A stretch of DNA of 63,206 nt, filler included, from Ministeria vibrans ATCC 50519 (Eukaryota; Protista; Filasterea), in NCBI GenBank assembly GCA_943704425.1. It is 4 parts of 4 records of this genome, joined end to end, with 100 filler letters (N's around TTAATTAATTAA, not from the genome) between each part and the next. Parts side by side here need not be neighbours in the genome. Positions count along the whole stretch, not along the records: positions 27,513 to 55,735 come from CALSCP010001513.1; 3 more parts are not named here. One strand, given 5' to 3'. Each line of letters opens with the position of its first letter. Position 1 is the first letter of the stretch. The notes under the pieces were generated by a model. The model did no database searches, was not told where the DNA came from, and worked only from the letters and a program-made list of their open reading frames with translations. Below, one piece after another: positions 27,690 through 55,735 of this stretch. Made by a program: the position numbers and the translations under genes.

Positions 27690-28876
27690 GACGCACGCAA
27701 TTGCCAAATGCGCTCCATTGGCCCAATGCCCTCCCTATGGCTTCCTTTGCACGCTTGCACCGTCGTCCCTCTTGCCAACCAACCGTGCCCTGTCGGCGCT
27801 GTAACATGCCGCCTCCGCCATTAGGCCCAATTTGTGACCCGAAATGGCACTACAAAAAAAGAAAAAGGAAATGGGCTGACATGTCACTTTGTCGTGTTAG
27901 GATCTGGGTTGGCTCACAGCAGCATGCATGTGCATGTCCAGTCAACACAGCAGCACCGCAGGCGTGCAACTGCTTCGACACACAGCGCCCCAAGCTGGGC
28001 ATTCGCGTGTACGCCCAGCGCGGCAACGTCTACGTCGGTGCCTACGACCGCTCCGGCGGCTTCTTCACGTACAACGCCAATCCGGGGGCGTGGGACGAGA
28101 ACGACTTTAGCACCGTCCAGGCCGAGTTCTTTGGTGGCATGCAAGGCGCCTTTCTCTTTGGCAAGGCGGGCACCACCGTCGCCAGTGGCAGTCCCGGCTA
28201 CTACTCGCAGCCGTCGTCCAAGTGGGTCGGTTCCAACGGACGCATGGCCGGCACCTTTTACGGCTATCCCTACACCGCCGGTACCAACACCATTGGCGCA
28301 CAGCTGTTCAGACCCACAGGCACCGCCAACAACGAGTACCTTGGCTGGAGCGTCGCCACTGGCGACGTTAACGGCGACGGCGAATTTGGTATCAAGCATA
28401 ATTTCAATAGGGCAACGTCTCTTCGTCACTCATACATCTTCTCACCTTTTCCCTTTTGTTTTCTCTTAGATGTGATCAGTGGTGTGCCGCGCCGCACACA
28501 GGAGACGGGTGAAGTGCGCGTGTACTTTGGGACGAGCACAGGCGGCCTTAACAACGTCAACAGCAACATCAAACTGCCCTCCAAGCAGTGGGGAGCCATG
28601 TTCGGCGCGGTTCTCCTTGTCTTAGACATCAACAATGATGGCTACGCGGACGTGCTTGTCTCCGCACCCACTTACGACTCGCTCTCGGCTTGGGAGACAG
28701 GCTCCGTCTTCGTCTACCGTGGCTCCTCGTCGGGTCCCTCCGACGGCGCCCTGTGCACCGCCGTCCCCTGCGCCTCCACCGTCGTCCAACAGCTCACTGG
28801 CTTAAGCAACGGCGAGCGCTTTGGTTACTCTCTTGCCTCTCTCGGCGACTCTGACAAAGACGGTAACTCACTTGTG

Positions 28877-28938
<62 letters not shown>

Positions 28939-32485: not shown

Positions 32486-32780
32486 TCTATTTCAAAAAAT
32501 GCTGATGATTACAATGTATTTTCGTTTTTGTGATTGATTATTGAATATATTTATTATTGATGAATTGGAACGCATCATTAATATAATTTGTTCTCTATTT
32601 GGGACATTCTCGTCTAGAAGGCTACGGTGGAAGTATTGTGCGGCTCTTTGTTTTGTATATAGTCTGTAATTATTATGATTTCTCGATTATTTTTCTTATT
32701 CATATGACATCTTCTCTTCTATTATAAATTTAAAATTTTAATCAATTCTTTTCCGCACCGTTATTCAGAACATCTTAATC

Positions 32781-33936
32781 ATGTCGTGGGCTCACTCGGG
32801 ACAGCCGGGAACAGGCGGGAATGCTCATTTGATGGAGGAAGTTCGATTGCTCGACAGACGAAATCGCGAAGACTATGACAACATTGCAAATGTCTTTTCG
32901 TTGCTCCAGGTTCGCATTGTGCAGAGTAGTGAGAGTGAGAGAGCGACAGCCGAAGCGCTTTAAGACGATATGTGTGTCTTGGTGTGAGAAACATTCCCCA
33001 GTGGCTCTTCTTCGTCGTTTGCCTTTATCGTCTCCGCTTTCCCCGCTTGCTGCCACAGGCGACACCCGCCGCAGCCCATTGCATGGCGTGCAGGCCTGAA
33101 TGGCCGGCTGCATGGCGTCATTCGTCCCAACTGACTTCTTTCAACAGACCATCGACCTGCTGGAAAAGGCGTATGTGCGCGGCGAATGCTCTGCCTCGGA
33201 GTACACCTCGGAGTGCCGTGGACTCATTGCACAGTTCAAAACCGCTCAGAACCTGTTGCCCGAGGAAGCACAAAACGTCGAAATGTTCGCAAACGAAGTA
33301 CGTTTCCCATTCCATTCTATTCACCCACAGCCAATCGCAACCGAGATCTGACCACTGTATCCACATCATGCAGTGGCATCTGTCATGCGGTGCGGCCATC
33401 AATCGGATTCGTATTGGTGTGCCAGCGACGGTCGAGGTGCGCCACCCTTACACATCACCCTATCCTGTCTCACCCCTCCCCCCTCTTCCCCTCCCCTCTT
33501 TCCCTTCCCTCTCTGTGGGTTTGTTCTCTTTGTGTAGCACGGCGGCTCCGACACCGTTGACCAGGCAAAAGAGTCGGTGTATGTGCTGGAGACGGGACAG
33601 TACATGATTACGCTCATGGATGTGCTGCGCCTCGGCCAGAAGGCCATGGACGAGGTCTTTCCCTACCTCAACTCGCTCCTCGACTCCATGAACAAGCTCT
33701 CTCGCATGCCCGCCGACTGGACCTCTCGCGATGTCGTCAAGAAATGGTACTATTTTCGTTTTGTTTTTTGCTTTGCTCGCGACTCAAACTGCCGCTCTTG
33801 TTGCTCTTCAAGGCTGATTACGATCCAGCAAATGAAGGCAACCGACGAACTGGACGATGCGCAAGTGCGCCAGATGCTCTTCGATCTCGATGCGGCCTAC
33901 CAGGACCTCCACCACCGCCTCACAAGCGGTCAGTAG
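32781..33936 (+). CDS. VPS28: ESCRT-I subunit VPS28, multi-exon
   Basis: EEVRL..REDYDNIANVFSLL|TIDLLEKAYVR..EYTSECRGLIAQFK..AAINRIRIGVPATVE..ITLMDVLRL..DELDDAQVRQMLFDLDAAY. Confidence 0.93.
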
Positions 33937-34120
33937 CGCAACACACGACACGACGCGCTCTTCCTCTCTCGATGTAACAAAATGCAATTGATCATTCAAG
34001 TCCGTCACGCTCAACGGTGTTCCACATCGTGACCATAGTTAAACGAACACCCGACCTGACATTGACTGTTCCACACACAAAATACAAACAATACACACTC
34101 TGATTTTACAACGCCGACTC

Positions 34121-34444: not shown

Positions 34445-34578
34445 CGAAACAAACGAAGCAAAGTGTGGAAGGAAAAATTAATATTGAAAATAATAAAAAT
34501 TCTTTCGATGAGAAGTTGAGAACTCATGAGATCATTCTTTTTATTTTATTATCACTATATTATACAAGTAACAGAAGT

Positions 34579-36410
34579 CTATTCAGACTGCTCTTCAGAT
34601 GCGGCCACAAGCGACGAAAAGACACTCTTTGGGTCACTGAGCAGTCGCGCAGGAGAGTCAAACTCAACCATTCTACAGAAAACAAACAAACAGTTAACCT
34701 CTCGCTCCCTCTCTCCTTGTGTTGGAATTGGTACTGTCCAGCGTCAAGCACAAGAATTCGATCGCAGTCGATGATGGTCTTGATGCGGTGCGCAATGATG
34801 AGCACAGTGCGCCCGACAAACTCATCGCGCAACACCTTTTGCAGCTGCTCGTCCGTCTTGAGGTCGACACTCGCCGTCGCCTCGTCGAGCAAGAGCACCT
34901 TAGCGTTTCGCAAGAAGGCACGCGCGACACTAAAGAGCTGACGTTGACCGACGCTGAAGTTGGCGCCCCCCTCGGCAATGGTGGCGTTGAGGCCGCCGTC
35001 GAGGGCGCGCACCGCGTCATGCAGCTGCGCGCGCCGCAACGCCTCCCACAGCTCCGTGTCAGATGCACGTCCGTGCGGGTCCAAGTTGAACCGAACGGAG
35101 GCAGCAAAGAGCACGGGGGACTGGGGGATGATGGCGAGACGAGCGCGGAGGGTGCGTAGAGGCACAGAGGCAGTGCTGAGATCGTCGATGAGGATGGTGC
35201 CCTCGTGCGGAAACACCAGTCGCAGCAGTGCCAGAGTCAGCGAGCTCTTGCCGGCCCCCGTGCGCCCACACACCCCGACCCGCTGTCCGGCCTCAATGAC
35301 CACCGAGAGGCGGCGCAGTGCGGGATCGAGTCCATCGCGATAGCGCACCGACACTCCAATGAGCTCAATGCGACCGTGCGCGGGCCACTCGCGCGGCGGC
35401 TCCTTCTGCCGCACAACCCGCCCCTGCGAAGCATGCAACGACGCAGCCGCATTGAGCGCCTCCTCGCTCTCCAGCCGGCTGTAGTGCTCAATGCGCTCGA
35501 CGGCGTTCATGTTCATCTCAGCGTCCGCCACGGCGCGCACCATCCAGTTGAGCGACGAAGTGACAGTCAGCGCGTACGACAGCGACAAACCTGCCAGTCC
35601 CGGGTCAATCCGATGCGCATTGCCCACAATAGACGCCGCTCCAAAGAACACAATGGTTGCGCCGAGGTACTCGAGAAAGCAGCCGAGCCAGCGATTGCAT
35701 GTGTTGAGAAAGAGAAAGTTGATAGAGGATGCGTCAATGTTGGCCGTCATGATCCGCATGAAGCGCTCCTGCACGCCATAAGCACGGATGGTCGCAACGC
35801 CATGGAGCGACTGCGACAACAGCCCAAACACCGGCGACTTAGAGAGACTCTCAAGGCGCTGAAGTTCGCGAGAGGTGGAGCGGAAGAAGCGTTGCATGTA
35901 GAAGTAGACGACGAGAATGGGGGCGGCCGCTGCAAGAAAGATGGGAGTCACAATGCCCTGCACAATCACCGAGGCAATCATTTGAAGAAACATGGACAGC
36001 AGCGACTGGAGGGTGCTGGGCATGCGCGAGTCAACCGTGTTGAGGTCGCCTGAGAAGCGATTGAGAATGCGGCCAATAGGCGTGGCGTCAAAATACTGCA
36101 TGGGCGCAGAGGCTATGCTGTCCACCATGGCAATGTGTAGTTTGCGACTCGCACGCAGGCCCGCATAGATTATCAGACCTGCAGTGAGCAGCGCCACCAG
36201 CATAGATGCTCCACTCAGAATAGCATACCCGGTCAGCCAATACTTGGTGGTGTGCACTGGTGTCTCTTTGCCAGTCTAACAGTTCAAAATTAATACAAAG
36301 AAAACAAAAGAGCGGTTAATAGTATTGTCATTTTTTCTACACAAATTCCGTCTTTCACACACAAATTTTAGTAATAATAATAATAACAATAACAGTAATA
36401 ATAAAAATAA

Positions 36411-36445
<35 letters not shown>

Positions 36446-36455
36446 TAATAATAAT

Positions 36456-36509
<54 letters not shown>

Positions 36510-36632
36510 TAATTATAATAATAATAATAATAATAATAAAAATATATGCGTGCTCGCTCTTCCTTTCTGACTGTCGGTTGTAGTCTCCGTCTCAGACTCA
36601 GATTTCTCGACAGGCACACACATACACATACA

Positions 36633-36718
<86 letters not shown>

Positions 36719-39124
36719 GGTTGTGGAAAAGAGTGGCAGTGCCGTGACCTGGTCCATGACGAGTGATGCGACGGCGTTGGTCACGTTCGGGGTCACATCA
36801 CCACTGCTGGACCATTCGCTGAGCCAATAGTCGGTGTAGACGAGAATGCCACGCGAGGTCATGAAGACAAGGAGAGTGCAGAAACACAGAATGGCTCCAC
36901 ACGCACTCGCATAGCTCATGTAGACACTCCACGCAACTGCGCCCGTCTCGCGCTCCTCCTTGTCAATGAGATCACCATCCTTCTTCTTCGTCGTCCCTCC
37001 CTTGGCATTCGCTATCACATCGACTGCAGATTCGGACACGACCGTCTTTGTCGATATGTTTGAGATTTGGCGCTCTTTCATGGCTGTTGCGCGGGCCACC
37101 TGTAAGCTGGCACTGGCAGTGGCAGTCATTCCACCGCTCGATCCGCCCGCAACATCTTCCTCTTTTACAAGGAGCGCGTTGCTTGCCTCGTTGCCCCCCG
37201 CCACAGCGTCCTGTACTAGCGTCTCGTCCTCGTCAACGACAACAGCCGACACCTGCAGCTCTTCGATCGCGTCACGGACATGCTGCTGATTGGGATGTCC
37301 CTGGGCACGCACTGCACACGCCTCAAGCACCACCACATGGTCGGTCTGGGATGCCAGGTGCAGATAGTGCGTCGAGAGCACCACTGTTTTGTGATGACGG
37401 TGTACCAGCGGTAAGATCACCTCCTGAAACACGTGGCGACCCGTGTGTGCATCAAGCGCCGACAGGGGATCGTCAAAGATGACCATGTCGGCGTACGGTG
37501 CAAAGTACATGGCGCGTCCAATGGAGACGCGTGCCTTCTGACCTCCCGATAGGTTCACACCGCGCTCGCCAATCTCCGTCATGTCTCCAGCGGGAAGCAT
37601 GGCAAAATCCGGCTCGAGGGCACACGCACGCACAACATCGTTGTACCGTTCAACGTCGTACTCGCAACCAAACACAATGTTATCGCGCAGTGTCGCATTC
37701 ATAATAAACGGCTCTTGCGCCGCATACGCAAACACAACCCCATTCACCACGCGATGGCCCGACACCACATTCATTTCGCCAAGAATCGCCGATATTAACG
37801 ACGACTTACCCGAACCCACCGCCCCCACAATCAACGTGAGTTGTCCCTGCGGCACACTCATTGTGATAGAGTGTAGCTGCCCGGCAGTGGTGCTTGTGGA
37901 TGCCATGGTCGGTTGTGTGACCTCTCGCTGGTGGGTGGTACTACTGCTGCTGCTCAAGTGTCCCTCCTTCTCATAACCCTCTTCTTCTTTGTCTTCGTCT
38001 TCCTCCTCCTCATCCTGAGTGTCCCATGCAAGTTGCGCACGCACAAATGACACGGCAACAGGACGCAAGTCACCGGCATCACTGTTCCCACCTGTCGCCA
38101 CAGCGGTTGTTGCACCCAACAGCGAGTGTTCCGACCCATCTCCTCCTTGTGAGTGTTCAAAGTCCCATTCACTCTCGGAGTTGCCACGACGACGCACTGG
38201 GGCACCCGACGAGATGGTAGAGTGACGGAAAAAGCGTTCGTGTTGACGTACAAGGTTGTCTTGTGTGGTGAGTAGCTGGGGTGCGTGCGGGGCAATTTCG
38301 TCGCGTGTGTAGAAGCTACGAAGACGCTTGACGGACACGGTGGCGTCCACCCATGTGTTGAAGATGAGCGGAAGGAAATTGAGGGGCATGCGAAGCATGT
38401 TGAAGAGAGAAATGGAGGTGAACGCACGCTGGGGGGTGAGAGGTTCGTCGGAGACGAAAGCAAACGCGGCAAAGCTCGAGAGGGTAACGAGCACTGGAGT
38501 GGCGGTCATGAGGAAGACAGTAAAGGCACGGACAATACCTGAGCGTACCAGACAGTGAAGCTGGTGGGCTCGTGCGGCACCAAGACGCTCAACAAAGAAG
38601 GTCTCCCACGACATGCACTTGATGACCTTGACATTCTGCAGCAACTCATCCGTCTTCTTCAGGCGATCATCTTCGGCCACGATGATCTTCTTTTGCCAGC
38701 GTGACTGCAGCGTCACCAACCGTGCCTGCACTGGCATAAGCACGACCATCATGGCGAGTCCTGTGAGACCCACTATACCCAGTTGGCCCACAATCAGAGC
38801 AAGTGCAATAGCAATTTGCAGGGGCAGTGCAAAGGTGTAGTTGACAAAGTAGAACCAAAAGAGAATCTTTGAAGTGTCCGTCGACATGTGATTAGCAATT
38901 TGGCCTTGGTTTTAGAAATAGAAAACGTTAAAAAAGCTCATCATAAACATTCTCTCTCTCCCATCATAGATGGAAATGTTCTCTCACCCCTCATAGATGA
39001 AAATATTCTCTCTCATCCATCATAGATGAAAATTCTCTCTCACCCATCATAGACGAAAGTATTCTCCCTCTCTCTATCACTTTGTTTCTTTCTCCCTCCT
39101 CTCTCTCTCTCTCTCTCTCCTCTT

Positions 39125-39170
<46 letters not shown>

Positions 39171-40759
39171 NNNNNNNNNNGCCCGCGCGCGTCTCGTTTG
39201 TATCAAGAGTCTTCGTGACAGGACCGTCTTCGTCGTACCAGCCGTAACTGTCCTCTCTCCCTCTTGTCAGTCAGGAAAAGTGTTGGGTACCGGCAGTGAG
39301 TTCTTGACGTTCCTTGTTGGTCAGTTGGAGGGATTTGTTGAAGATGGCGGTTTGGAGACAGGCGCGTGCGTGAACACCTGCACGCATGACAATCTGGTGG
39401 TGATTCTGCATCAGAGTTGACTAAGACGGGTGGAAGGAAAAGATGAGCATTGCAGGATTGGGACTCGTGAGTGCAATAGATTTCTACTTGAAGACAGTTT
39501 CCGAGGAGAAGAACGCCAATGAGGACAAATCCATTGGCAAAAAAAGCCGAGAGGGTAAGGATGGAGGAAGGAGCGCGCACGGAGGAGGAGTGATGTGGCA
39601 GATGTTGCTGTTGGACAGTGGTGACGTAGGTGACGATGCCATTGAGGCAGATAGGACCCAGGAATGCAAGGAGGTTGCCGGCAAGCATGCAGCCAAGAGC
39701 AATGACCATGGGCTTCCAGAAGCACTGAGCAAGCGCTGTCCAAAGCGAGCGCTTCTTGTGTTCGTGGGGCATGGCTGAGTGTCGCCAACGACGGTCAAAG
39801 TCGGCGTAGAGCGACGCGGCAATGTCGGCGGGCGGCAGACGGCCCAGGTCGGTCTGTTCCAGTGGGGCTCGGTAGCCCTTGCGGATAGTGGGCACCATGA
39901 AGGAGAAGGTGACGTACGAATAGAAGTTGGCACATGCGTCGCGGAAGACGAGGGGTAGCGTACGGGTATCTTCGCCATTTTGGTCTCGTTGGGGTCGGAG
40001 ACCACGACGGGGTGCGGCAAGCAGTGTGACCAGTTCCATGACAATGAGAGAGAAGCAGAGAATTGCAAAGGCAAGGTAGTTCCAAAACCGAATGTCGTCG
40101 TCGTACTTGGGGATGGCAACCACGATGCGGTGGGTCAGGGCGGACGCACCGAGAGACATGGCGAGCCAGGCCGGGAGAAGGGCAATCATGGTCGTGGAGC
40201 GACGCACCAACTCACAGTGGTGGCACGTAACGAGCGAGAAGATGAAAGCAATAAAGAGGACAATGGGGGTGAGGAGTGCGTGGATGGGTGTGGCGCTTGC
40301 GGAACCAAACGAGAGGATGTTGGCGGCGAACATGACGAGCGTAAGCACAAGCAAGAGAAAGACGACAATCCAACGGGCGTTGTGGACGGGCGTGTGCCAG
40401 GAGCGGGCGTAGTCGTCATCGTAGACGGAATACGACGCGGAGGTGTCGCTCGTGGCGAGGAGACGCTCGCTCTCGCCGGGATTGACGCTCAGCGCGCGCG
40501 TCGTGTGTTTCGTGCGTGTTTTGCGTTGCACACAGATGAGCGTAGCGAGAGTCACCACGGCGACGAGCAAGGCCGCCCCATCAAAGAGGACGCTGTCGAC
40601 AAAGCATGGCGTCAGCTGCCGCGTGCCATCGACGACCGTAAGGGGTCCCTAGACGAACCCCAAAAATTAGTGTGATGAACTTGTTTTTTTTTTTTTTTCT
40701 TTTTTTCTCTTTTTTGTTTCCATTCATACAAATCCCTCGGGGCCACAATAGGACGCCAT
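34579..40759 (-). CDS. Long ABCC transporter with TMD0, sulfonylurea receptor (ABCC8/9)-like
   Basis: MASYCGPEGF|GPLTVVDG..PCFVDS; WHTPVHNARWIVVFLLL; LGRLP; FFANGFVL; TAGQIANHMSTDT; NBD1 GAVGSGKSS, TEIGERGVNLSGGQ, FDDPLSALD; DYWLSEWS; NBD2 GRTGAGKSS, FSVGQRQL, LDEATASVD. Confidence 0.88.
38950..39070. repeat. Intronic ~28-bp minisatellite, about 4 copies
   Basis: The unit TTCTCTCTCACCCATCATAGATGAAAAT repeats imperfectly inside an ABCC intron. Confidence 0.8.
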
Positions 40760-41038: not shown

Positions 41039-42709
41039 ATGGAACGTGCGCGAGACATGCTGCGCAGTCCGTCGATGACGCACCCGGGCGCACGCATTGT
41101 GGTCCATCCGGAGGAGGCTGAGGCCAAGGCGTCCAAGCTGTCCCCGCTCAAGAAGCACTGGTTCCTCATTGGAATCTTCGTGGTCATCACCCTGGCCAAT
41201 ATGGCGCCGTACGTGGGCGCGAAAGGTATTTGCGAGCGGTTATCAGTGTCGTGTCAGAGAGAGAGAGAAGCGCTTTGAATGCGCGCTGTTTACGGTTGCT
41301 GCCGGCGCCGACTGGGTTCCCACGCTCCTCTAATTCCGCCCTGGGGTGCATGTAGGAGGCCCGCTTGTCCCGGAAATCACCATCAAGTACATTGCCGTGT
41401 CCTTTATCTTTTTCAACAGTGGTCTCTCACTTCCGTCCGACCAGCTCCACAAAGCCATCTTCAACGTCCGTGCCCATGCCTTCATCCAGCTCTTTACCAT
41501 GGTTGGCATTCCCATCGCCATTCGCTTTCTCGTCTATCTGCTTGGGTAAGACACGAAGCGAAGGACCGACACAGACTGTGTGTGTCGCTGGCACGGCACA
41601 TGCACTGCTCTACACCTCCTCCTCACCTTCTCGCCATCTCTAGCGCAACGTCATTGTTGGACCCGGCGCTTCTCAGCGGGCTTATGGTTCTGGCGTGCAT
41701 GCCTCCGCCAGTCTCGTCGGCCGTCATCGTCACCAAGGCAGCCGGCGGCAACGAGGCCCTTGCCATCTTCAACTCGGCTCTCGGCAGTTTTCTGGGCATT
41801 TTCGCGACTCCCTCGCTGATTCTCTTCTTCCTGGGTAAGGCGCAACACATTTTTTTGACGAAGAGGAGAGAGAGAGAGAGAGAGAGTAAGAGTCTAAGAG
41901 AATTGAGAGAGAGAACGGAGTGAGTGAGTGAGAGAGTATGGGTGCGTCTGACTGTGTTTGTATCTGTTTGTCTGCGTGTGTGTGTGTATGTATGTATGTA
42001 TGTGTCTATGTGTGAGAGGTACTCATAGTTCTTTTTTGAAAGGGACAACTGCGGAAGTGCCCTTTGGGAGCATCATTGGAACGCTGATGATGACTGTGGT
42101 GGTGCCATTGCTGGTGGGGCAGCTGGTGCGAGTGCGGTACTGGACGCGAGTAATTGAGCCGATGGGGATTCCGTTTAGCACGCTGAGTGGCCTCATGCTG
42201 CTGCTCATCATCTACGCTGCCTTCTGCGACACGTTTAGCCACGAATCGTCGCTGCCAGCCACGCAGCTGCTCACGATCGTCTTTATTGATTCCTTTCTTA
42301 TCCTCTCCTTCACTGCCATTGCCTTTGTCATCTCCTTTCGCCTCTTGGCCTTTCCGCGTCCCGATGTTGTTGCCGCCATGTTCTGTTCCTCGCACAAGTC
42401 ACTCACACTCGGTAATAAGCAAACCATCACACAAGCAGCACCGCACGACAAAATGACAACCGTCAAGCAACCCATTATCTCCCTATTACCACCACCCAGA
42501 ACAGCCACTCATACACTCTTATCCGTTTCCTAGGCATGCCTATCCTGTCCATCATCTACTCGGGCCGTCCCGAGCTTTCCTTGCTCTCCATCCCTCTTCT
42601 CATGTACCATCCTCTCCAGATCCTCATCCATGGCATCATGGTTCCCTTTGTCCGTCCTTTCCTTGCTGCTTCGCCTCTTCTTCCCCTCACCACTGTATCC
42701 CCTGTATAA
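41039..42709 (+). CDS. SLC10A7: Sodium/bile acid cotransporter 7-like (SLC10A7/RCH1), multi-exon
   Basis: [11 protein letters not shown]|[73 protein letters not shown]|[15 protein letters not shown]. Start could be 41039, 41057 or 41075. Confidence 0.92.
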
Positions 42710-42762: not shown

Positions 42763-45758
42763 TCACTTCATTTCACTCTTGGCGCGTTTCTTCAACTTGG
42801 CAACCAACCTCTGCACTTCTGCCTCTCCTTCTCCCTCTCCTTCTCCCTCTCTCTTTCGCTTTTCCTTCCTCCCCTCACTCCCTCCTCCCTCTCTGCGCTT
42901 CCGTCGCTCTCCCATCACCTTCTCCATATTCTTCGTCTTCTTAAACTCCGCTGAAGTCGGATCCAGCGCAAACTCGCTCGATGAGAACAGCGCTGAAAAC
43001 CGCTCGTCCTTCAAATCCACCTCAAACCCATCTTCGCCCTTTTCCTCCTCCGCCGACTCCTTTCCCTTCTTGTTCTTCTTCTTCTTGTTCTTCTTCTCCT
43101 TGTTCATAATGTCCTTCAAGTCAAAATGTGCCTTGTTCCCCTCCGCTCCCTCTTCCATCATCAGCAGTTCCAGTCCCTCTCGCTCCTTCCGCTCCTCCTC
43201 CGTCTCCTCCTTCGCCTCCTCGCCCTTTGTCTTCTTACTCTTCTTCTTCTTTTTCTTGTCCTTTTCACTCGTACTCTGCTCCATCCTTCGCATATTCTTC
43301 AGTTCCTCTGCAAAATACGGATCATTGGCGAACCGTTCATCGTCACTCTCCTCCTCCTCGCTACTACTCCCCTGCTCTTTCTCCTTCTTCTTTCCCCGCT
43401 TCTTCTCCCTCCGCTTCTTCTGCACCTTCTCCCACACACTCAACTCCTTGTCCTTCTCACGCTCTTCCTTCCGTTTCACTGCATCGCTCACTTTCTCGCG
43501 CAGCGCCGGTGTAAAAGTGATCTCCATATCTCCCTCTTCTTCTTCTTCTTCTCCATTTCCCCACTCTCTTTGCTGCTTCTTGTTTTGCTTTTCAAGTTCC
43601 TACACACAGAGAGCAACTGAGACAACAACAAACAACAGCGGCAAAAACTAAGCAACAATCTACCTTGGCGTGTTGAAGCAAATCCTTCATTGCGGCAGTG
43701 CGTCTCTCACGCGCACTCAGGCCGACTCCTTCCTCCTCCTCTGCACTGTCCGACGACGACGAAAGGTACTCTTGCAGGTCTGCATTTAGCATATCATCCT
43801 ATTAAAAGAGTTTGAGAGAAAGAGATGTTGAAAGAGAGTTCGAGAGTGTATGAGAGAGTTTGAGAGGATGAGTGAGAAAGTTTGAGGGAGAGAGAGTTTG
43901 AGGGTGTGTGAAAGAGTTTGAGGGTTTGAGATACATAAGTATATATAGAGGGAGAGATTTTCACTCATCAATGATGAGTGGCACACACACTCACACTCTT
44001 GTTTCGTTTATCCCTCTTTCAAACGAACCTTTGAGAAGTGTCGAGTGAGCTTCTCGAGGCGCTCGCGTTCAGCCGGTTCACCTTCATCCCACGTAATGGC
44101 GACTCTGCTTTGCTGAAGGCTCTTCGTGTAAAACGAGTGGGGAGTGTAGCCCGACGGAACAGAAGTGCAACTCTCGCGGGGGGTCTGATCAAACTCAGTG
44201 TCCTATGTGAACAATTCCATTGTAATTAATTGATTCAGCGTGTGTGTGCGTGTATGTGTGTGATACGTTAGGAATGAAGCGCAGGTCGAATTCATTTGAG
44301 GACGTTTCGAATTCAAGACCATCGCATGCGGAGTAGAGTGACTGTGCAGTGGCCACTGTGTCGCACTCGACGACAGCGTAGAAGTACCGCATGCGACGCA
44401 CCTGCGCACAGACGCGTTAGTAGTGCACCACAGTGTGACATGAACAAATAGTGCAGAGTGGGTGAATTGGCGAGTGCAAAAAATGAGTGCATAGAATCAA
44501 ACTACGACTCTCTCTCTCTGTGACTTCGTGTGTCTCTGACCTGATACCGGCGCATCACCAAATCCTCCACTTCCTTCTCATTGCTTTTGTCCTCCTTTAC
44601 TTCCGGAATCGGCAGTCCCTCATCTTCACTAAAATTATTATACACAAAACAATTTTAAAAACTTCGCCTTTTTCTTTCTCTCCTTCGAAACCTGTCACTG
44701 CCCATCATTGGACCAATTTCCTGCTCCTTGGCCATGCACCTCTGTCCATAGTCAGACGGGTAAATTGTCACCTTTCGAATCACTCCCTGTCGCAAAAAAA
44801 AAAGAAGAATCAAAACAACGATTTCCTTTCTCCATTGCGCTTTTACCTGATCAGATTTAAACGATGAGAAGATGGCAAACAGATCCACTGCTCGCACTGA
44901 ATCCCAGTCAAGATTGCACACTGCCAATCGTGACGTCGCTTCTTCTGTCAACTCAACCCTACCACAGAATAGTACACCCAATTAGCAAAACAGAATTGAG
45001 ACTCTGTCTCATCGACTGACTTTTCTCCGTGCGCGTAAGCCCACACTTCATCGTAGAGCTGCGGATCAATCTCGGGCGCATCGTCGTCGGCGCCATCGTC
45101 GTCGTCGTCGGAAGAGTCTTCGTCGCTGTCGTCTTCGTCCGATGAAGAGACAAGTCCTTCGCCACGCGCATAGTCAGGCGCTTCGTCGTCCTTCTCTGCA
45201 TCATCGTCATCCTCATCGTCATCCTCATCCTCATCATCATCGTCGTCGTCCTCCCCCTCCTCATCGGCAGTCTTCTGCGTGCCTTTGGACTTTGCTTTGG
45301 GCACTTCGTCGTCATCTTCGAGACTGTACAATAAATGTGCATGTGTCAAAAGTTCACTCGTGTTGTCGTTCTCTCTTCGCTCGTGCTCCCACTTACGCGT
45401 AGTAGCGCTGCAAGTCGTCTTGAGTGTGGCTGCTACGCACCTTCTTCCCGCGTTTGTCCACAGAGGCTACGCAAAACGCACCAAGCCGAAAAACGTGTGA
45501 GGAACACACGCGAAAAACGAAAAAGTCCATGTGGCACGACAGCGGCCTGCTTGATCGCATCCAATCTCTTACACTGCGACACAAAATCCTTGTCCTTGAA
45601 CATTCCCTCAAAGCGCTTGTCGATTTTCACTTTGTGTTGTTGTCGGCGCGGTTGCTACAGAGCGGAGTGCCGGGTCAGTTTAGCATTCGCCCCACACTGC
45701 GCCAAAGACTCACTTTGAAACGCGCATCCCGCGCAACATTGAACCGATCGTCAGGCAT
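42763..45758 (-). CDS. ESF1: Pre-rRNA processing protein ESF1, multi-exon
   Basis: [81 protein letters not shown]153-type [18 protein letters not shown]. Confidence 0.93.
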
Positions 45759-46103: not shown

Positions 46104-47406
46104 GAGAGAGAGAGAGATTGAGAGTTTGCGAGAGAGAAGAGAAGAGAAAAAATAACATTATGGAGAAACAATGAAAACGAAAGATCAGAGACAAGAGAGA
46201 GCAAGTGAATGTAAACTGTACCGAAACTGGATCCCACATATGGCCATTGAAGAGCGATTGCTATAGATACACAATCATAATAAATGAGAAGAAGAAGAGG
46301 AAGACAAAGAAATAATAATAATAAAATATTATAATAATAATTAAGAAAATCATTATTGTTAATTATTATCTTCAGGGTACCCTAGCGTCATACCTGTGCG
46401 GTGGTTGCAGTGAAAAAGAAGGCGTTGATGAGGCCCGTGCCGTTGTTGTAGTCATTGTACATGAGCGTCACGGGGACCAGGTTGCCCGCATCCCAGGACA
46501 TGGCTGGTCCTGCATACAGATGTCCTTTCCCGTGAGCAACTTGTATTCATACACGTCATATTCGTACCGGTGGAAATGTCACGGAACCAATGGGTGCCCA
46601 TGGTCGAGAAACAGCTTCCTTTGGTCCAGCCGGCAGCGAGTGCCTCCTTGTCGGTGGTGGGAAGAGGGTAGTTGAGGGCACCCTGGTTGAGCACAAGTTG
46701 GTTGCCGAGCGTGAGCGAGGGATCGGCTGCGCCAGAACACATGGCCGAGGGCACGCGAAACGACACACTCATGTAGTGGTTGCCGTTGGCCAGCGGGATA
46801 AGGAAGCCTTTTGCGACCATGTTGGCCTAAGTGAGGGTGGAACACAAGAGTGAGGTGTTTGCCTTCTCCCCTTGTCGTTGCTAAACCAAGCGTACCTCGA
46901 CCTTGCCGAACACTTCGACACCCATGCCGGACACCTGGCCAGCAGAGGTGAAGTACAGGGTCACCGGCGCGTCCTTGGTAGGCCCTCCCTGGACGCTCGC
47001 ATAGGCAATTCCGAGGCTGGGGTTGCACGTCGAATTGTAGGCGGACCAGCCCATTGTGGCGGCCGCCGCGGCGGTCACAGGCATGTCATCGTACTGAGTG
47101 TACTCTCGGTGAAGCTGGTTTCCAATGTTTACCGGCGTGAATTGAGCTATGGGGACACGAGGAAAAAGTTCAAAATTAACACTGGATGACAAAAAACAAA
47201 AAAAAACCCCACACTGGTTTGTCAACAAGACACCAACACGCCAGTGGATGACCAGGGACACACTGCTGAAGGAGTGTCTGCTGGCCTTCCACGGACCGCC
47301 GCGCGTCGAGTGGTTTTGATGGAATGGGAGACACTCTATTACCTGAAACCGAATGTGAAACCGACGCGCTCACAAGAGCCACTGCCAGCACGAGATACGT
47401 CTTCAT
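45880..47406 (-). CDS. Secreted Cys-rich protein of unknown function with internal P.T...A...GW repeat, about 6 exons
   Basis: Signal peptide MKTYLVLAVAL; MPVTAAAAATMGW..C and LPTTDKEALAAGWTKGSCFSTMGTHW; C-terminal MCDNFCDKSC..TMHVY..CPDNCHISCC. Confidence 0.75.
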
Positions 47407-48137
47407 TGCACGCTGAGTGATGAGAATTTCTGATGTTCTGAAGTTTCTGAATGATCCATTGGGATGGTAAGGCGCTGTGAGGACTGATGCGAAGGACGGA
47501 CCTTTTTTGATCGCTGAATAAAATCGACCTAAGTAAGGGAGAAAGAGTCGCAATGGCTCTGCTCACAGCGGGTTCCCTCAAGGCCTTTATGAACGGACGT
47601 ATCGTACAATGTGCATTCCAGGCTACGATCCGTTGTGCCAAAGTTCGTTCTCTACATCTCTTTTACTCTCTGGCAGTTTTTTGAGGGTTGTCCACTCAGA
47701 ATTATTGAGGGTTGATTTTGAAATTAATTTTGATCACTATTCATTTTTCGCCCAGACACAGTGACACTCTTTTCTCTCTTCCTCTTCCTCTATTTGCTGG
47801 GCACGCCCCACTTTCCTTTCGTGCACCCCCTCCCCCCTGGTGTCCACTCTCCCTCGACTGCTTCTGAGAGACTCTTTAAGCGACTTTCGTCTTTTTTTCG
47901 TCTCGTCACTCTCTTGGACACCATGTACGCAACTGCGATCGCTCTGCGTGATCGCCTGCTTCCACATGGAGCGAAACCGACTACTCTTCAACCGTCTTCC
48001 GGCAAGCCTCCTTCAAAATTTACGAAATGTCGAATGGGACTGGACGATTTTTCCGAAGAAAAAAAAAAAGCAAAACGAAACAAATTTGCAATTTGCGTTT
48101 GCCAACAAGGACTTTAGCCATCTGCCGGCTTGCATCA

Positions 48138-51100
48138 ATGGCCCAAGTGCCTGATACGTGGTGGGTCTGCGCTTGTCGTGCGTCTAGGGCGTGGGGGTTT
48201 GGCATTTGACACTCTTTGCTTTGATCTCTCTTTTCCACTCACTGCTGTCGTCCCTCTCACGCGTCCCCTCGCCCTCTCACTCCCGCCAACGCCACCATGC
48301 GCATCCTTCACACCCTTCTCTTTACCCCTACTCCCTTTCGACTCACTTTTTTCTTCTTTTTTTTTCCCGTCTTTGTTTTTCTTCAAAGGGCCCCTCACAT
48401 TAATCTCGCTATGTACGACCTACTGTCCCGCCTTGTTAGCGCATCGGTTGCCTTGTTCAACGAGTGGCACCCCGTACGTCACCAGGGAGAGAGGGAGAAG
48501 GAGAGAGAGAGAGAAGGAGAAGGAGAGATGAAGAGCAGAATGAGAGATCAATAATAACAGAGGCTCTCTCTCTTTTTTTCCCTTTCTTCGCTTTTGTTTC
48601 TGGGGATGACTCGATCGCCCCCTAACCCCCCCCACGGCAACAATACGCTCGTGCCATTTGCCACCTTTGGCTTTCTCTTTTTTGTTTTTCTTGTGCCTGT
48701 CACTTATGTCATACCCCAAACATGTAATTGTAGTAGTATAATTATATAGGCTCACAAGATTTTTTTGGTTTGATTCTCTTCCTACTGTACTCTAATATGA
48801 TTTCTGTTGCTCATCTTGTTTTTTTTTTTTGTTACAGATCCAAGAGGTCTCTCATGAAGGCGACGTGTATCACATACACATTATGCTCTGCCAGCCTCGA
48901 GAGGGAGAGAGCCTCAACGAACTGGAAGGTCGTCTGCAGGGCATTCTTGTGGACCTGCAGGAAAACTGGACGAACCCTCAACAGTTCATGCCAGAGGCAA
49001 AAGCCATCTACGACCGCTTTGTCCAGGCGGCCAGCAAGCAAGGCTACGCGCGCGATGGACGACCAGAGTTTCTCAAGGGTGAGTACGAGGGTGAACTGAA
49101 GTTCAAGCTCGAGTGTGCGGGTGGCGTGAGGCGACAAGCAAAGCAAGACAACCTCACCTTCCCGCCACCGCGCTGCCATATCAAACTCCTCGGACGTCCT
49201 CAGAAAGACAGCATTGTAAGTAGAAATGAGCATTCATTGAAAACACACCCAATTTTAAAATCAATTTGAATCTTGTGTTTNNNNNNNNCCTTCAGGGTCA
49301 AGAAGGCCAAGGAGAAAACTCGCGGCTTGACCAAGACTGCGGCGGCCCAGGCGTCGCAGAGTGAGGACAATATGTTTTGCAAAGAAAGGGGGATGAAACG
49401 GCTGGATGCGGAGCCTCAGCAGAGAGAGTGCGATCAGGAAGAGTGGGAGAGGAGTAGCCAACTGAAGCTTCAGGAGTTTGGCGTCGATCCTAACATGTTG
49501 GGTGAAAATCCATTCATCATTCCACCACAGCAGCCGCAGCCGCAACCGCAACCACCACAACCACAGCCGCCGCAGCCGCAACCGCAACCACCACAACCAC
49601 AGCCGCATTCAGACACCAATTTACCACTAGTGGGTGGTTCGGTCAATAGCGTCAGTCCGTTGACTGTTGGCCAACCCGACTTCGACGCATCGTTCTTGGC
49701 CAACGAGGACGTTGAGCTGTGCTTTCCTGACCTAGCCATTTACGCCACACTCAACCAGGAGGGCACTTCAGACACCAGCGATATCGTCACAAAACTTCTT
49801 AATGCCTTGGACTCTCCTCCGGTAAAAAGATATAATTTTATTATATTTTTATATCATGATTTTGTTATTATTACCAAGCAAATTCACACCTCTCTCTCTA
49901 TCACTTTGTTTCTTTCACTCTATCACTTTGTTTCTTTCACTCTACCACTTTTTTTTCTTTCTCTCCCTTCTCTGGTGTGTGCGTGTGTGTGTGCCTTACC
50001 TTTTTGTTTCTCTTCCACATTCGTTTTGTTCAGGTTGATATGGAAGACATTGCGTCCACCTCAAGTGCCATGTTGTTTGCAGGCTCACCCTGCAGCATGG
50101 CGTCGTCGTCATCCTCCTCGTCGTCGCTTCAGTCCTCTTCCCCGTCTTCATCGTCGTCCGGGTTGCCTTCTGCCTCGTCGTCTGGCATTGCGGTAAATGT
50201 GAGCAATAATGATCCCTTTTTTGTTTTGATTTTTTTTCTTTTTTTTTTTGTAGCTACCTGTTGATGCAAGGGCAACGGCTATCTCGGTCGAGATTTCTGA
50301 AATAGATTTTTGTGATATTATAGCGACCATCGCGGAGGGCTTGGCAAGCCCCCGGGTTGCACCCGAGTCGCCGGACGACCGACGCTCACGCAGTCTAGAG
50401 CCGGTGCGCCCTCTCGTTCCCTCTGGTGGTGGACCCTCTCCTCCTCCGCCTGGCGCTGGCTCTGCATCGGCATTTGGCGCTGCATCTGCATTTACATCTG
50501 GCCCTGCACCTACATCCTCGTCAGGCAGTGTTGCTGGAACTGGCAGTGGCAGTGGCAGTGATGGTGCAACGGACAGTGGCAGTATGGACGTGGACGACCG
50601 TGGCAGTGACGACCAAGGTGGCAGCATGGACGTGGACGAAGGTGGCAGTGTAGACGATGACAATGTTGCGGACAGTACCAAAACACCCGACGGTCGCCCA
50701 CAAGCCATGGGTGCCAGTCAATCTTTACATGCCAGGTTCCAGCCCATGGGCGCTGCAATGGGCACCTCGAGTTCTCGCTGTACGTCATTCGTCCACAAGA
50801 CGGCATACTCATGCTCACACACACGCACACACTCTCTCTCTCCCTCTCTCTTTCTTGTTCTAGCCCCTCACATGAATTTCGCGGACAAACACAAACACGA
50901 TCAGGTCACACGAGTTTCCCACTCTGGTAAAAATTTCACACAAACTACCCAAGCATTCGACTAATCAACTGGGTTTTTTCTTCATTTTTTCATAGAGTCC
51001 GTTCCGCTTTTGGGCGACCTAATGGCACAGCGAGGATGCAGCGGTACAACAGCACACTCTCATCTATCATAGCCCCTGTTGTCTTTTCCGCTCACTTCCA

Positions 51101-51676
51101 TCTTTCTTAGACCTTGTACGGCGCGAAAACTCAGCACCGGCTGGTTCCCAACAGTCACTTGACCATTCCCAACAGGTTTCAACCAGACTCATTCCGACCC
51201 CATCTCACTCTCTCGTTCAACTTCTTTTCTAGACTGTGTACTTGTGTGGACGGCACGTCGTTGGGGACTTGTCCGCCTCTGAGATGATGCATAACCTTAC
51301 GCACCTCGCGAATAACTCGGCAACTGAGGAGAAGAAACTGAGCACCCTCGTCACTGCCAATGCCTACCTTGCCCGTCTCCAAGTCCTCGCCGACTTGCCT
51401 GACTTTGCCCGTCTCCTCTACCGTCTTCTTGTCATCATTAACGCTGGCCGTCTCACCTTTACCAATTCCGCCCCGGTGATGGTGCGCAACGGCACCTTGT
51501 CACTCATCGCTGACAACGGAGTGTTCATCACCATTGCTCCTCACGTACGTATCACCCTCTCTGTCTCCACTCTATTCTTATTCTGTACTCTTCCTTAGTC
51601 TGACTCGACGCTACAATTCTTCATCTCGCGTTTGTCCAAGGAGGTTCTGACAACACTGAAAAACGCCCAAAAATAA
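48138..51676 (+). CDS. Gene A: novel domain X, then Q/P-, Ser- and Asp-rich low-complexity region, then novel domain Y
   Basis: Phase-consistent exons 48138-48157, 48389-48473, 48838-49215; further exons across an 8-N gap near 49281 (junction phase unresolved); last exon EVLTTLKNAQK* ends at 51676. Middle exons are approximate. Confidence 0.7.
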
Positions 51677-51812
51677 AGAAGAAAGAATGGGCGTGTAGTG
51701 CGCCTTCGGTGCAGAGCCTGGGATCTACTCGAATTTTATCATACCCTATATATCAAACAATAAAAAGGCCAAACAATAGAAAATAAATAGAGAATCAAGA
51801 GCTGTACTCAGA

Positions 51813-54800
51813 ATGAATGACGATAATGAGGTCATTCATTCTACTCAATGCAAATAGTTGACATAGTATTATTTTTCGACGAACAACAAGTAAGAAAAGA
51901 TACAACGCATGTATGACAAGAACCTCCATCCAAGTTCATCTCCACTTTCTTTTACGCTGTAGCCAACCGCTCTTTCCAAGATCCTCCATCACAGCAACAA
52001 CACCAACACGTGTTTTCAAAGTTGCGTGAGGCGGTGGGTCGGGGAGGAAGTTAGTTGAATTTTCAACGAATTCATTCACGATCACACTACCCTCAAATTT
52101 TCACTTTCACACACTTTTCTCCAACAAAAACGGCACATTTTCTCTCTTTTATTGTCGAGAAACGTTCTTATTACTGGTACGACTGAGTAGCGACTCAACA
52201 CGAACAGCGCCGCTCGACACTCCTTGCAAAAGGTTCGTCTCGTGTTGTTCCGTATCCCTTCTCTAGTCATCGCTCTAAAGTTCAACAGCAAAGACTCGCA
52301 CGCTGCATTGCGCCGTATCGTTGCCCACGTGGATGCCTCTAAGTTCTCACGGACAAAGACAGACTGTTTAGTTTGCGCCGGTTGCACAGTGGAACACCCT
52401 CAAACATTTAACACAGCGAAGTTCCAGCGAAGTCTTTCAATGTGCGCCCATAGGCACTTCCCCACGCCACTCGCTCCCCTCGTGATTCCCCTCCGCACCG
52501 TCCATTGTCCATTGACAGTTTTGACACACCATGCGCCCCTCCACACACGTCTTTCTTCTTCTGCTTTCGCTCTCTTTCTCTCACAATCATGAGCTGTTTT
52601 ATTCATTTTTTTGAGGGTTAATAAGAAAAATGGCCGTTCCATTTCGTCCTTTATTGCTGTTAACTGTGATTTCTCAAGTGTGCAGCTGTGTGATTCTCAC
52701 GGGGTCTTTTTGACGCAAGATATTGAGACGGCTAAGAAATTGAGGGTGGGGACTGTTTTTTTTGCTGCTTTGCTGCGGAACAATAAACAATTTATTCTGG
52801 AGCTCTTCCCCAGTTTGACACTCCACTAAACTGTAAAGCTTGTATAGCGACGGCTGGTGCGTGTTGTGTGTGGGATGTCGAGTTTTGTTATTTTTATTAT
52901 TCTCGCTTATAATTTTTTTTCCGTCTTCGTTTTTTTTTAAAATACACTAAAAATCTCGTCCGCTTGCTCCGTAGACGTCCACAAAAGATATGATGCAACA
53001 ACAAGTACTGTTTGTGATTGGAACGGACGTGTTGGGGCCGTTCCACTTGGCGGCTGCCTTGGAAGGCACAGCGAGACGAATGGCGTCTGTCTTTCAGTTC
53101 TTGGACTATCATGTGACCGTACTTGCGGAACATCCCATTGGTGCAAGTGTCAATCAGGCGACGCTAGCGCCGACTCATGTCAACATCCAAAACACTGTTC
53201 GCTCACTGTCTTCTTCCACTTCTCTCGTTGTGTACTTTCTTGGGCACGGCGCGTGGGACAGCAACGGCAATGCTGGCCTGGAAACAGCAGACGCTCACCC
53301 GGATCGCCCAAACAAGGCCACCAAGAGCAAGCCCACAACTTATTCCAATCTGTACACGCAATGTGACCTCCTGAGAGACCTTGGCGATCGCTTTCAGCAT
53401 GTTTTCCAAATCAGCGACCTCTGCTACTTTTCGGTGCCACTCGACAAGACAATCTTCTCACTCGACCCCAGCTCCTGCGGCAACTTTATTGCGCTTAACA
53501 ACGACACTAACACAGCGCGGTACCTTCGCAGCCAAGGCGGCTCCTTCCACGTGCTTACCACATTCGCACTCTCCCCCGACACATACCTGCTTGATGGCGA
53601 CGGCAACACGCTTCTCTCACACGCTCTGCACAACCTCCTTGCCGAGAACCTCACCGGCAATTTACCACCGACTCCGCCAGCCTTCCTTGTTGACAGCGTT
53701 TCCGTCGAGTGCATTTCCATCCAACGATTGGCACAGCTAATCCACGATGAAATTCATCGGCTTTGTGCTGGCCGTATTGGTGTGCAATTTGGGCGGGCGC
53801 CATGGCCTGGAAAGGAGAACACGGGCGAATTTGTTTTTTTCAATCCACTGGGCGCCATTGCTGACTGGCTGGCGTCTGGTCATGACGGGAGCAGCAGTAG
53901 GAATAGTGTCGAGACGTCGCGCTCTCCCGTCATGCTGATTATTTTGGCAGCGAATGAGGACCCGCACCGGGTAGAACGGATTGCCGAGACGCTTGGACTG
54001 GGTAGTGTGTGCCGGCACGTTGTACTCGGCCAAGAGGGTGAGGTGCTATCGCTGTACGAAGGCGACAATGCTCTTGTCGTTTTAGCTGAGCTGGGATGCG
54101 TCGACAACGAAACGTGGGCTGAGCGCGTTGCGCGGTGTGTCTCATCGCACGTCACTACTTACGCGGTTGTGCTTGCCCCCATGGCCGAAGCGAGCTTCCC
54201 TCGGATGATGCGAGATGTCTACATTGCCAGCGGTTACCAGTCTTCGAATGGCATGTCTCTCTGCTCGCCCTTTCAAGAGGAGCAGCTGGCGGCACTGTCG
54301 AAATTCATTGCGGAGATGAAGCTGTCGAGATTAAAAATTGGAGTGGTCCAAGAGGCTCAGGGCATCGGAAAGGCTCTCGCGTGCCCGCACCTCCTGGCCT
54401 CCCTGTTGCCTCTGTGGAATACATCGTCGACTGTTGTTGCGTCTCTCTACACCATCCCCATTGGCATGGCGATTTGTGTCGGGGGTGACCAGTTGATCGA
54501 GGAGGACGCCTTCTTACCAGCGGCACTTGTCATCGTCAGGGCGCTTCTGGCCAACCCGGCATTGCGTACACTTGCGCCACCGCTGCTCGTAGAAGTGTCG
54601 CTGGTGCTCGATGCACCGTTGGTAGACCTCAATGTGATTCTCCAAGCAGCAGTCGATGCTTCGTGTCGTGTTCGCTATGCGTTGGGTCCCACGTTGCGCT
54701 GCATCACCTATGAGAACGAAAGGGCGGTGGTCAAACTCTCCTGTGACGCAGTGGGCGTGTGGGCTCTCAACGCACACCTCTCTTGCTCTAACCGGACCTT

Positions 54801-55577
54801 TGCCGGACTGTCTGTCATAGAGTTGCGCATTATCAAGTGTTCGCCGCTTGATATTATACGAAAACCACCAAAACTCGTCGACTCACAAACCATGTAAAAA
54901 ACGAAAATAATTATTATGATAATAATTAATGATGATGAGTGATGGATGATGCGTGATTTTATTCTAACTCTATGATTTTTTTTTTTTTTTACTTTTGCAG
55001 TGGCGGTCATGATCATTCACCGGCTGGATTTCACGAGGAGATTATTCGCATTGTGTCGACGACAGAAGCGGTTGATGTGTGGACACACGTACAAAAAACA
55101 AACAAACAAACTGTGTGATCATGTTGTGCGCTGATCAACGTTGCGTTGTTGTTGTTGTTGTTGTACATTTTTATGTAGGAGGGACCCATACCAATTGGGG
55201 AGCCCATTGGATCGGAACTACTTGATGTACATATTCTGCTTGTTCATCCGCGTGGCGATGAGACGTGTGAGATGGTGCGAGACCGACTTGTATCGCAGAT
55301 AAACGAGCTCAAGACGCACTGGAAGGAGCCGCCGTCGGAAGGAGCCAAGATGCTCAAGAAACATATCAATCGGACGCGCGAGATGCATGGCTACACGAGC
55401 GATGGGAAGCCAGCGTCGGGCCAGAGTGTGAACGGTGAACTGCGACTCAAGTTGGACTGCAGTGGTGGTGGCACGGCACGCACTGTTGTCGGGCCTGACA
55501 ACCAGAAGCTCATTTATCCGCCGCCGAGAGGTCATTTGGCAGTGCGAATGCGATCGGACGGAGTCGTAAGAAGATGA
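51813..55577 (+). CDS. Gene B: domain Y, caspase-family (peptidase C14) protease, TIR-like domain, possible TRADD-N-like domain, domain X
   Basis: Exons ~52191-52232, 52281-52365, 52417-52441, 52679-52745, 52975-54893, 55001-55088, 55179-55577 splice in frame. Catalytic motifs VVYFLGHG and SDLCY; terminal QFGR...GEFVF. The start codon (51813) is a guess. Confidence 0.75.
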
Positions 55578-55635
55578 AAATATTTAACAATACTAATAAT
55601 TTAGTAATAATAATAGAAAAATTAATTAAAATAAT

Positions 55636-55735
<100 letters not shown>

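Follow-up and report, generated by a model that had tools for sequence, protein, structure and literature searches.

The locus described here lies in a window of 63,206 nucleotides (nt) of DNA from the filasterean Ministeria vibrans ATCC 50519 (assembly GCA_943704425.1), which consists of four parts of four records joined end to end; positions count along this whole stretch. The part analysed, 27513–55735 (CALSCP010001513.1), is intron-bearing nuclear DNA and carries two putative neighbouring genes on its + strand, gene A and, downstream of it, gene B. Their sequences firmly indicate an old partial duplication of a domain of approximately 130 residues, here termed X, with one copy (X1, 48838–49215) at the start of A and the other (X2, 55179–55574) at the end of the probable caspase-like gene B, both copies being open and located on one strand. 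The reading that we favour, to which we assign a probability of about one in three, is that B encodes a lineage-specific caspase-like effector and A a partial tandem paralogue that shares X as an adaptor. All exon junctions and gene models were derived from the sequence alone, and the searches and structure models were run exon by exon, with each exon taken by itself.

Domain X and gene A

The two copies of X were found by translating all frames and comparing the open reading frame (ORF) pieces of at least 25 residues all against all, where they match at E = 1e-14. In a pairwise BLASTP comparison, the X1 ORF piece (48796–49266) shares 31% identity over 125 residues with 55179–55574 (E = 3e-17). 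The similarity is reproduced by tblastn, with the match running to 49224. The alignment contains 41 invariant columns, including the stretches G-E-L-x-x-K-L-x-C-x-G-G and P-P-P-R-x-H, and the X1/X2 pair is the sole significant protein repeat within the locus (47.5–55.7 kb). An earlier sequence-only reading of this DNA had claimed that the N-terminus of A and the C-terminus of B share a domain on the same strand, and this similarity bears the claim out. A third X-like copy, suspected by eye in the C-terminal part of B's large exon, was rejected, as about half or more of the shuffled sequences reach its score.

The main exon of X1 (48838–49215, +) is bounded by an acceptor AG at 48836–48837 and a phase-0 donor GTAAGT at 49216. 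It is preceded by a putative first coding exon of A with 21 codons (48411–48473, +; ATG at 48411, phase-0 donor GTACGT at 48474), which has a coding score (codon-usage log-odds per codon) of +0.25, while the other five frames score negative. X is thus located at the predicted N-terminus of A, after this ATG exon, and X1 itself scores +0.17 to +0.37. In B, the main exon of X2 (55179–55577, +, including the stop codon at 55575–55577) forms the C-terminus and is preceded by a small exon of 29 codons and one base (55001–55088, +; acceptor AG at 54999–55000, phase-0 donor GTACAA at 55089). This small exon scores +0.09 and links B's large exon to X2 in frame. A short exon and a phase-0 intron therefore come before each copy of X, approximately 9–13 residues ahead of the conserved core, which fits the duplication of a two-exon DNA unit and suggests that such a unit was copied. 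The similarity of the two short exons to each other is not significant (shuffled sequences score as high in 450 of 5000 cases, p ~0.09), and their correspondence as counterparts is suggestive.

Downstream of X1, the tail 49216–49266, up to the in-frame stop at 49267, has the score of non-coding sequence (−0.56), and the presumed intron contains an assembly gap of 8 N (49281–49288). Past the gap, the first AG (49294–49295) is in the wrong phase and the second (49301–49302) is in frame at phase 0. The gap leaves the junction between X1 and the next exon putative. Three exons could follow. The first (49303–49821, +; donor GTAAAA at 49822) encodes a basic stretch, a PQ repeat and an acidic segment, and has no Pfam match. 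Its PQ-coding repeat has a 9-nt period (49524–49604, repeat family D4), and the acidic segment (49660–49821), with a sliding coding score of 0.29–0.39 at 49660–49780, looks folded. The second exon (50034–50192, +; donor GTAAAT at 50193) is rich in Ser (25 of 53 residues) and in frame with both flanks at phase 0. The third (50254–50964, +; stop at 50962–50964) is rich in Gly, Ser, Ala and Asp and contains an optional in-frame intron of 84 nt at 50780–50863. A may continue into these low-complexity exons (49303–50961), or it may consist of X alone and end at 49267. The sequence-only reading had described A as X followed by low complexity; the PQ repeat, the Ser run and the Gly/Ser/Asp-rich stretch do follow X1, and this low-complexity sequence is probably disordered.

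Two small repeats were observed in the same region. At 50552–50655 (+), three imperfect 38-nt units encode a repeated acidic motif resembling Gly-Ser-Met-Asp-Val-Asp-Asp/Glu (family D6). In addition, a 20-nt motif occurs in exactly two copies in the piece, at 48390–48409 and 50863–50882 (+), which are identical at 18 of 20 positions. The first copy ends 1 nt ahead of the putative start codon of A. The second holds an ATG at 50872; 11 codons further on lies a phase-0 CAG/GT (50905), which the acceptor at 51232 would join in frame to the Y exon described below. The motif could be a leader or promoter element common to two tandem genes, or a chance similarity (rough estimate p ~0.05); a shuffle test of the motif is circular, as the pattern was derived from those two copies.

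X has no family match in Pfam, NCBIfam or PADLOC, in line with the initial statement that it was not recognised as a named family. In the protein-language-model Atlas, where scores below 0.9 are leads only, X meets no named cluster, and its unnamed neighbours score at most 0.86. A profile search of proteins of 73–231 residues, made without a full HMMER scan of long proteins, found no relatives of X in which linkage could be compared. No relatives were found in prokaryotic genome contigs or JGI metagenome contigs either, and the 101-residue X2 ORF is not on record in an exact-product look-up. The AlphaFold2 (AF2) model of X, based on the two-sequence alignment, has a mean predicted local distance difference test (pLDDT) value of 62 and a predicted template-modelling score of 0.54, with the core at 70–84. 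It predicts, with moderate confidence, the element order beta-alpha-alpha-beta-beta-beta-beta. Foldseek found no match of the model in the PDB at E ≤ 0.001 (best E = 0.09), the top matches being uL22 ribosomal proteins with template-modelling scores of 0.3–0.4. The exhaustive VIA search agrees in kind, with a peak Z of 4.7 for a uL22-like alpha+beta protein, which is below the background range stated for the tool. The predicted model is too poor for the fold of X to be called new. A complex prediction of X1 with X2 returned a score of 0.00, that is no answer, which speaks neither for nor against binding.

The probable caspase-like domain and the remainder of gene B

The large exon of B contains an open frame of 635 codons (52990–54894, +; ATG at 52990) with native-like codon bias across its whole length. 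It has a phase-2 donor, GTAAAA, at 54894, and two GT-AG introns (54894–55000 and 55089–55178) join it in frame to X2. From the ATG at 52990, the joined exons comprise 2388 nt, corresponding to 796 codons, and the predicted B ending in X, with its stop at 55575–55577, is a coherent model.

The first part of the large exon (52990–53859, +) probably forms a caspase-like domain of the Peptidase C14 fold, with a candidate His86 in the motif FLGHG (53245–53247) and a candidate Cys145 in the motif SDLC (53422–53424), located 59 residues further on. C14 peptidases carry their catalytic His and Cys in the order GHG ... DxC, each after a core beta-strand and about 40–60 residues from each other. Three weak lines of evidence lead to this family. 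Residues 19–89 match positions 14–83 of the PF00656 profile locally, with E values of 0.022 and 0.0094 and 14.8–16.1 bits when the first 160–290 residues are used as query, below the cut-off of 21.4 bits. Residues 28–108 match the NCBIfam model NF047832, 'caspase, EACC1-associated type', at E = 2.3e-4, with 20.7 bits against a cut-off of 140. In the Atlas, the best named neighbours of the large exon are all caspase clusters (0.86, 0.85 and 0.84), the second being a bacterial caspase/TIR fusion cluster. The PF00656 match stops at residue 89, just after FLGHG, so that the Cys half has no profile match, and no p10-like region was found in the large exon. Pfam gives nothing above threshold in any exon. 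The AF2 model of the large exon, calculated without an alignment, has a mean pLDDT of 36, and its order of strands and helices is compatible with the caspase-hemoglobinase fold, without being diagnostic. We consider the assignment as caspase-like probable, short of established membership in the family.

No relatives of the large exon were found at E ≤ 0.001 by phmmer among 1.84 billion representative proteins, or by word-index search, in PDB sequences or by tblastn on plasmids, and the 635-residue ORF is not on record in an exact-product look-up.

After the His86/Cys145 region, approximately 490 residues of the large exon have no family assignment. The sequence-only reading had placed a TIR-like and a TRADD-N-like region here, behind the caspase; convergent sub-threshold matches support the caspase-like part of this domain order, whereas the other two calls find no support from hidden Markov models. 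The region called TIR-like (53929–54339, +; residues ~314–450) alternates between beta and alpha elements in the low-confidence model. The TIR models PF01582, PF13676 and DUF4062 were considered, and residues ~290–490 match no TIR model of Pfam, NCBIfam or PADLOC at E values up to 10; 53929–54339 has no match in Pfam, NCBIfam or among PDB sequences. The sole hint of a TIR domain is the caspase/TIR cluster ranked second in the Atlas (0.85). TRADD-N (PF09034, PF13820) has an RRM-like fold (Kaur et al. 2021, PMC8195603) of the order beta-alpha-beta-beta-alpha-beta, with a conserved Ser at the beta2–beta3 turn. The region called TRADD-N-like (54340–54893, +) is the C-terminal part of the large exon. 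Neither 54340–54894 nor 54538–54894 has a Pfam match, NCBIfam gives none either, and 54340–54893 is not significantly similar to X. The element order of the X model differs from that of TRADD-N, and no RRM-like protein is among its top matches.

The Y exon and the readings of the locus

A single strongly coding exon, the Y exon (51233–51544, +; ATG at 51284, phase-0 donor GTACGT at 51545, read-through stop at 51596), separates the low-complexity exons of A from B's large exon. Its coding score, +0.48 with sliding values of 0.65 and 0.36, exceeds all others in the locus, and it has no family match in Pfam, NCBIfam or PADLOC. The sequence-only reading had taken Y for a second domain shared by A and B in mirror order (X...Y in A, Y...X in B), so that X:X and Y:Y contacts would clamp the two proteins antiparallel or chain them into a filament. 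No second copy of the Y exon was found in the 28-kb piece (tblastn, E up to 10). In Smith-Waterman comparisons with the three A exons, the Y exon does no better than shuffled sequences, 307, 389 and 79 of 500 of which reach the respective observed scores. BLASTP of the A-side + strand ORF pieces against the B side (E up to 50), and of the Y exon against the large exon, gives noise only. With Y in a single copy the mirror order fails, and the clamp or filament lacks the second shared domain that it needs. The earlier reading may have placed the one Y exon in both gene models. Its broader picture of two same-strand neighbours with a shared unassigned domain and a divergent caspase-like domain stands, whereas its Y:Y half falls away: judged by sequence, X is the only domain common to A and B, and there is no second contact through Y.

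The Y exon may open the coding sequence of B, close that of A or stand as a small separate gene. It joins 52975 in frame once an intron of 1430 nt is removed. As the last exon of A, it would be reached from the weak phase-0 donor at 50905 and be read through to the stop at 51596, with AATAAA-like signals 75–190 nt beyond. Nothing coding-like was found on either strand of 51600–52970. We give a start of B at 52990 somewhat less than an even chance, and regard a B that includes the Y exon and is a gene separate from A as a weaker, tentative option.

The same frames would also allow a single long gene, encoding X, low complexity, Y, the caspase-like domain, the further region and X, in which the X:X contact would be intramolecular and autoinhibitory, or head-to-tail. 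All parts lie on one strand with no coding signal between them, and an in-frame chain runs from the CAG/GT donor at 50905 to the acceptor at 51232 and from the Y donor at 51545 (GTACGT) to 52975 at phase 0. However, the donor at 50905, GTCACA, is unlike the GTA-type donors predicted elsewhere in the locus, and the 1430-nt intron would have four times the length of the longest of the other introns placed here (60–364 nt). Moreover, the in-frame stop at 50962 closes the ORF of A, and the AATAAA-like signals at ~51.67–51.79 kb, after the Y read-through stop, suggest the end of a transcript. A single gene is improbable on this balance.

In the reading that we favour, B would be a lineage-restricted, intron-bearing gene in which a very divergent caspase-like protease domain forms the start of the large exon and in which two short introns lead to the orphan domain X at the end. 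A, located upstream on the same strand, would open with the paralogous X, followed by a low-complexity, probably disordered tail, and the pair would most likely have arisen through a partial tandem duplication that copied the unit coding for X. X would act as a protein-protein adaptor, through which A could recruit, scaffold or restrain the caspase-like effector B, either by X:X contact or by competition for an X-binding partner. The same domain is found at the C-terminus of the effector protein and at the N-terminus of its neighbour (E = 3e-17). A domain shared by an effector and a neighbouring protein is the signature of homotypic adaptor domains, and from this we infer the adaptor function. 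The parts are orphan, as the searches yielded relatives of neither X nor the large exon, and an effector with a shared adaptor is a known kind of system.

Several observations weigh against this reading. The caspase matches are below the curated cut-offs and cover the His half only. The codon bias of X2 is near zero. The model of X, of moderate confidence only, is predicted to be alpha+beta, unlike the all-alpha effector-associated domain (EAD) and Death folds, and has no fold match. In the searches made, X has no detectable relatives through which linkage could be compared across genomes. The two-gene layout itself may not hold. In addition, the adjacency of genes in eukaryotes is a weak sign of interaction, and partial tandem duplicates arise neutrally.

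Such neutral duplication is almost as likely as the adaptor reading. The X unit would simply have been copied, leaving an A that is an unrelated protein (for example, a nuclear low-complexity protein that has acquired X), an X-only ORF ending at 49267 or a decaying copy, and A and B would not interact. A and B share nothing beyond X, and the identity of only 31% marks the two copies as old, so that they may have drifted. The X1 homology extends three codons past the GTAAGT donor (to 49224) towards the in-frame stop at 49267, which makes an X-only product possible, and the junction from X1 to the next exon has a first AG that is out of phase and is interrupted by the assembly gap. On the other hand, both copies hold long open frames, X1 has a clear coding bias, the donor GTAAGT at 49216 is perfect, and the low score of the 49216–49266 tail favours splicing there.

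It is also unlikely, in our view, that the caspase-like call is spurious or the domain catalytically dead, with B being an orphan of other function, or that the locus is unexpressed. All family matches do fall below the curated cut-offs, the Atlas scores are in the range of leads, phmmer found nothing among the 1.84 billion representatives and the single-sequence AF2 model has a mean pLDDT of 36. No protein of the A/B locus was found in the public protein collection, whereas the VPS28 locus of this species is publicly represented at 99.4% identity. Against this, three methods of differing principle converge on the same family and residues, and a 635-codon frame with native codon bias throughout is very unlikely in non-coding DNA. 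A bolder version of the adaptor reading appears just as improbable: an integrin-bearing eukaryote, possibly a unicellular relative of animals, would possess a caspase-like, perhaps caspase-TIR, effector of the type of bacterial conflict systems, recruited or regulated through the previously unseen non-death-fold adaptor X shared with a neighbour made of X and a disordered tail, as an independent invention of adaptor-protease coupling outside the DD/DED/CARD superfamily.

Parallels with known systems can be drawn for the arrangement of A and B. The human CARD-only proteins CARD16/COP, CARD17/INCA and CARD18/ICEBERG are encoded beside caspase-1, arose when its CARD exons were duplicated and can modulate the protease by homotypic contact. 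The putative A resembles them as a partial tandem duplicate of recruitment-domain exons that has become a neighbouring gene with the adaptor only, but X is not predicted to be a death fold and lies at the C-terminus, not the N-terminus, of the protease, and A may have a long disordered tail. Compared with the metacaspases and orthocaspases (PF00656), the large exon would have the same order of a beta-strand, GHG, about 60 residues and DxC, and matches locally over the His half; unlike members of this family, it remains below the gathering cut-off, has no p10-like or Cys-half match and no homologue among the 1.84 billion representatives.

In bacterial conflict systems, EADs and Death-like domains link caspase and TIR effectors to partner proteins (Kaur et al., PMC8195603). 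The locus is similar to the bacterial EAD systems (Kaur et al. 2020, 2021; PMC7159879, PMC8195603) in that a non-catalytic terminal domain of a caspase-like effector recurs in a neighbouring gene, in that the best profile match is the 'caspase, EACC1-associated type' and in that the language-model neighbours closest to it include bacterial caspase/TIR fusion clusters. It differs from them in being eukaryotic and intron-bearing, and in an A that has low complexity only and no nucleoside triphosphatase or sensor domain. Moreover, X is predicted to be alpha+beta rather than an alpha-helical EAD/Death fold, and no EAD-family match was found. For the pairing of TIR with a caspase-like domain, type IV Thoeris would be a precedent if the centre of B is really TIR-like (Rousset et al. 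2025, reference 24 of bioRxiv 10.64898/2026.05.01.722283). In Thoeris, the two activities reside on separate proteins linked by a small-molecule signal, whereas B would be a fusion with a putative TIR-like region.

If X is indeed a homotypic adaptor of a caspase-like effector, adaptor-coupled protease signalling could be built in a eukaryote from non-death-fold parts, and the logic of the bacterial EAD type would be linked to eukaryotic cell-death or immune modules. At present, A and B are two orphan genes with a single genuine domain in common, which is a modest lead rather than a new system.

Neighbouring genes and minor features

The genes flanking A and B are ordinary eukaryotic ones, and no further immune-like or conflict-like gene was seen among them. 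The 27513–55735 piece contains an integrin alpha match (FG-GAP, Ig-like 3), with an integrin-alpha-like ORF at 28867–30786 (+). Such a gene is consistent with the organism being a unicellular relative of animals but is no proof of it. VPS28 (33538–33933, +), an SBF-like transporter (41952–42530, +) and a NUC153/ESF1-like protein (42766–43599, −) were recognized by ORF matches. An ABCC-type transporter (34563–40648, −) has at least three large exons, among whose ORFs two represent paralogous halves (E = 4e-8). The Rfam scan of the whole piece gave no match.

Around the VPS28 locus (32622–34039), contigs of 1.4 kb in the Logan assembly SRR23272272 and the ENA metagenome assembly ERZ23497041 are 99.4–99.5% identical to the piece, non-coding sequence included; because of these matches, the species is considered to be present in public data. 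Proteins of the A/B locus were not found in the protein collections, though the VPS28 locus of the same species is in public data, which points either to incomplete coverage or to a strain-variable locus.

Immediately upstream of A, the other strand (46452–47553, −) holds ORFs with a signal-peptide-like start and without a Pfam match, which may encode a secreted orphan protein. This gene and A may have a common divergent intergenic region at ~47.6–48.4 kb. A run of 10 N at 39171–39180, within an intron of the ABCC transporter gene or close to one, looks like an assembly gap. At the other end, a long (AAT)n microsatellite (55600–55735, +) begins a few dozen bases past the stop codon of B and extends to the edge of the piece.

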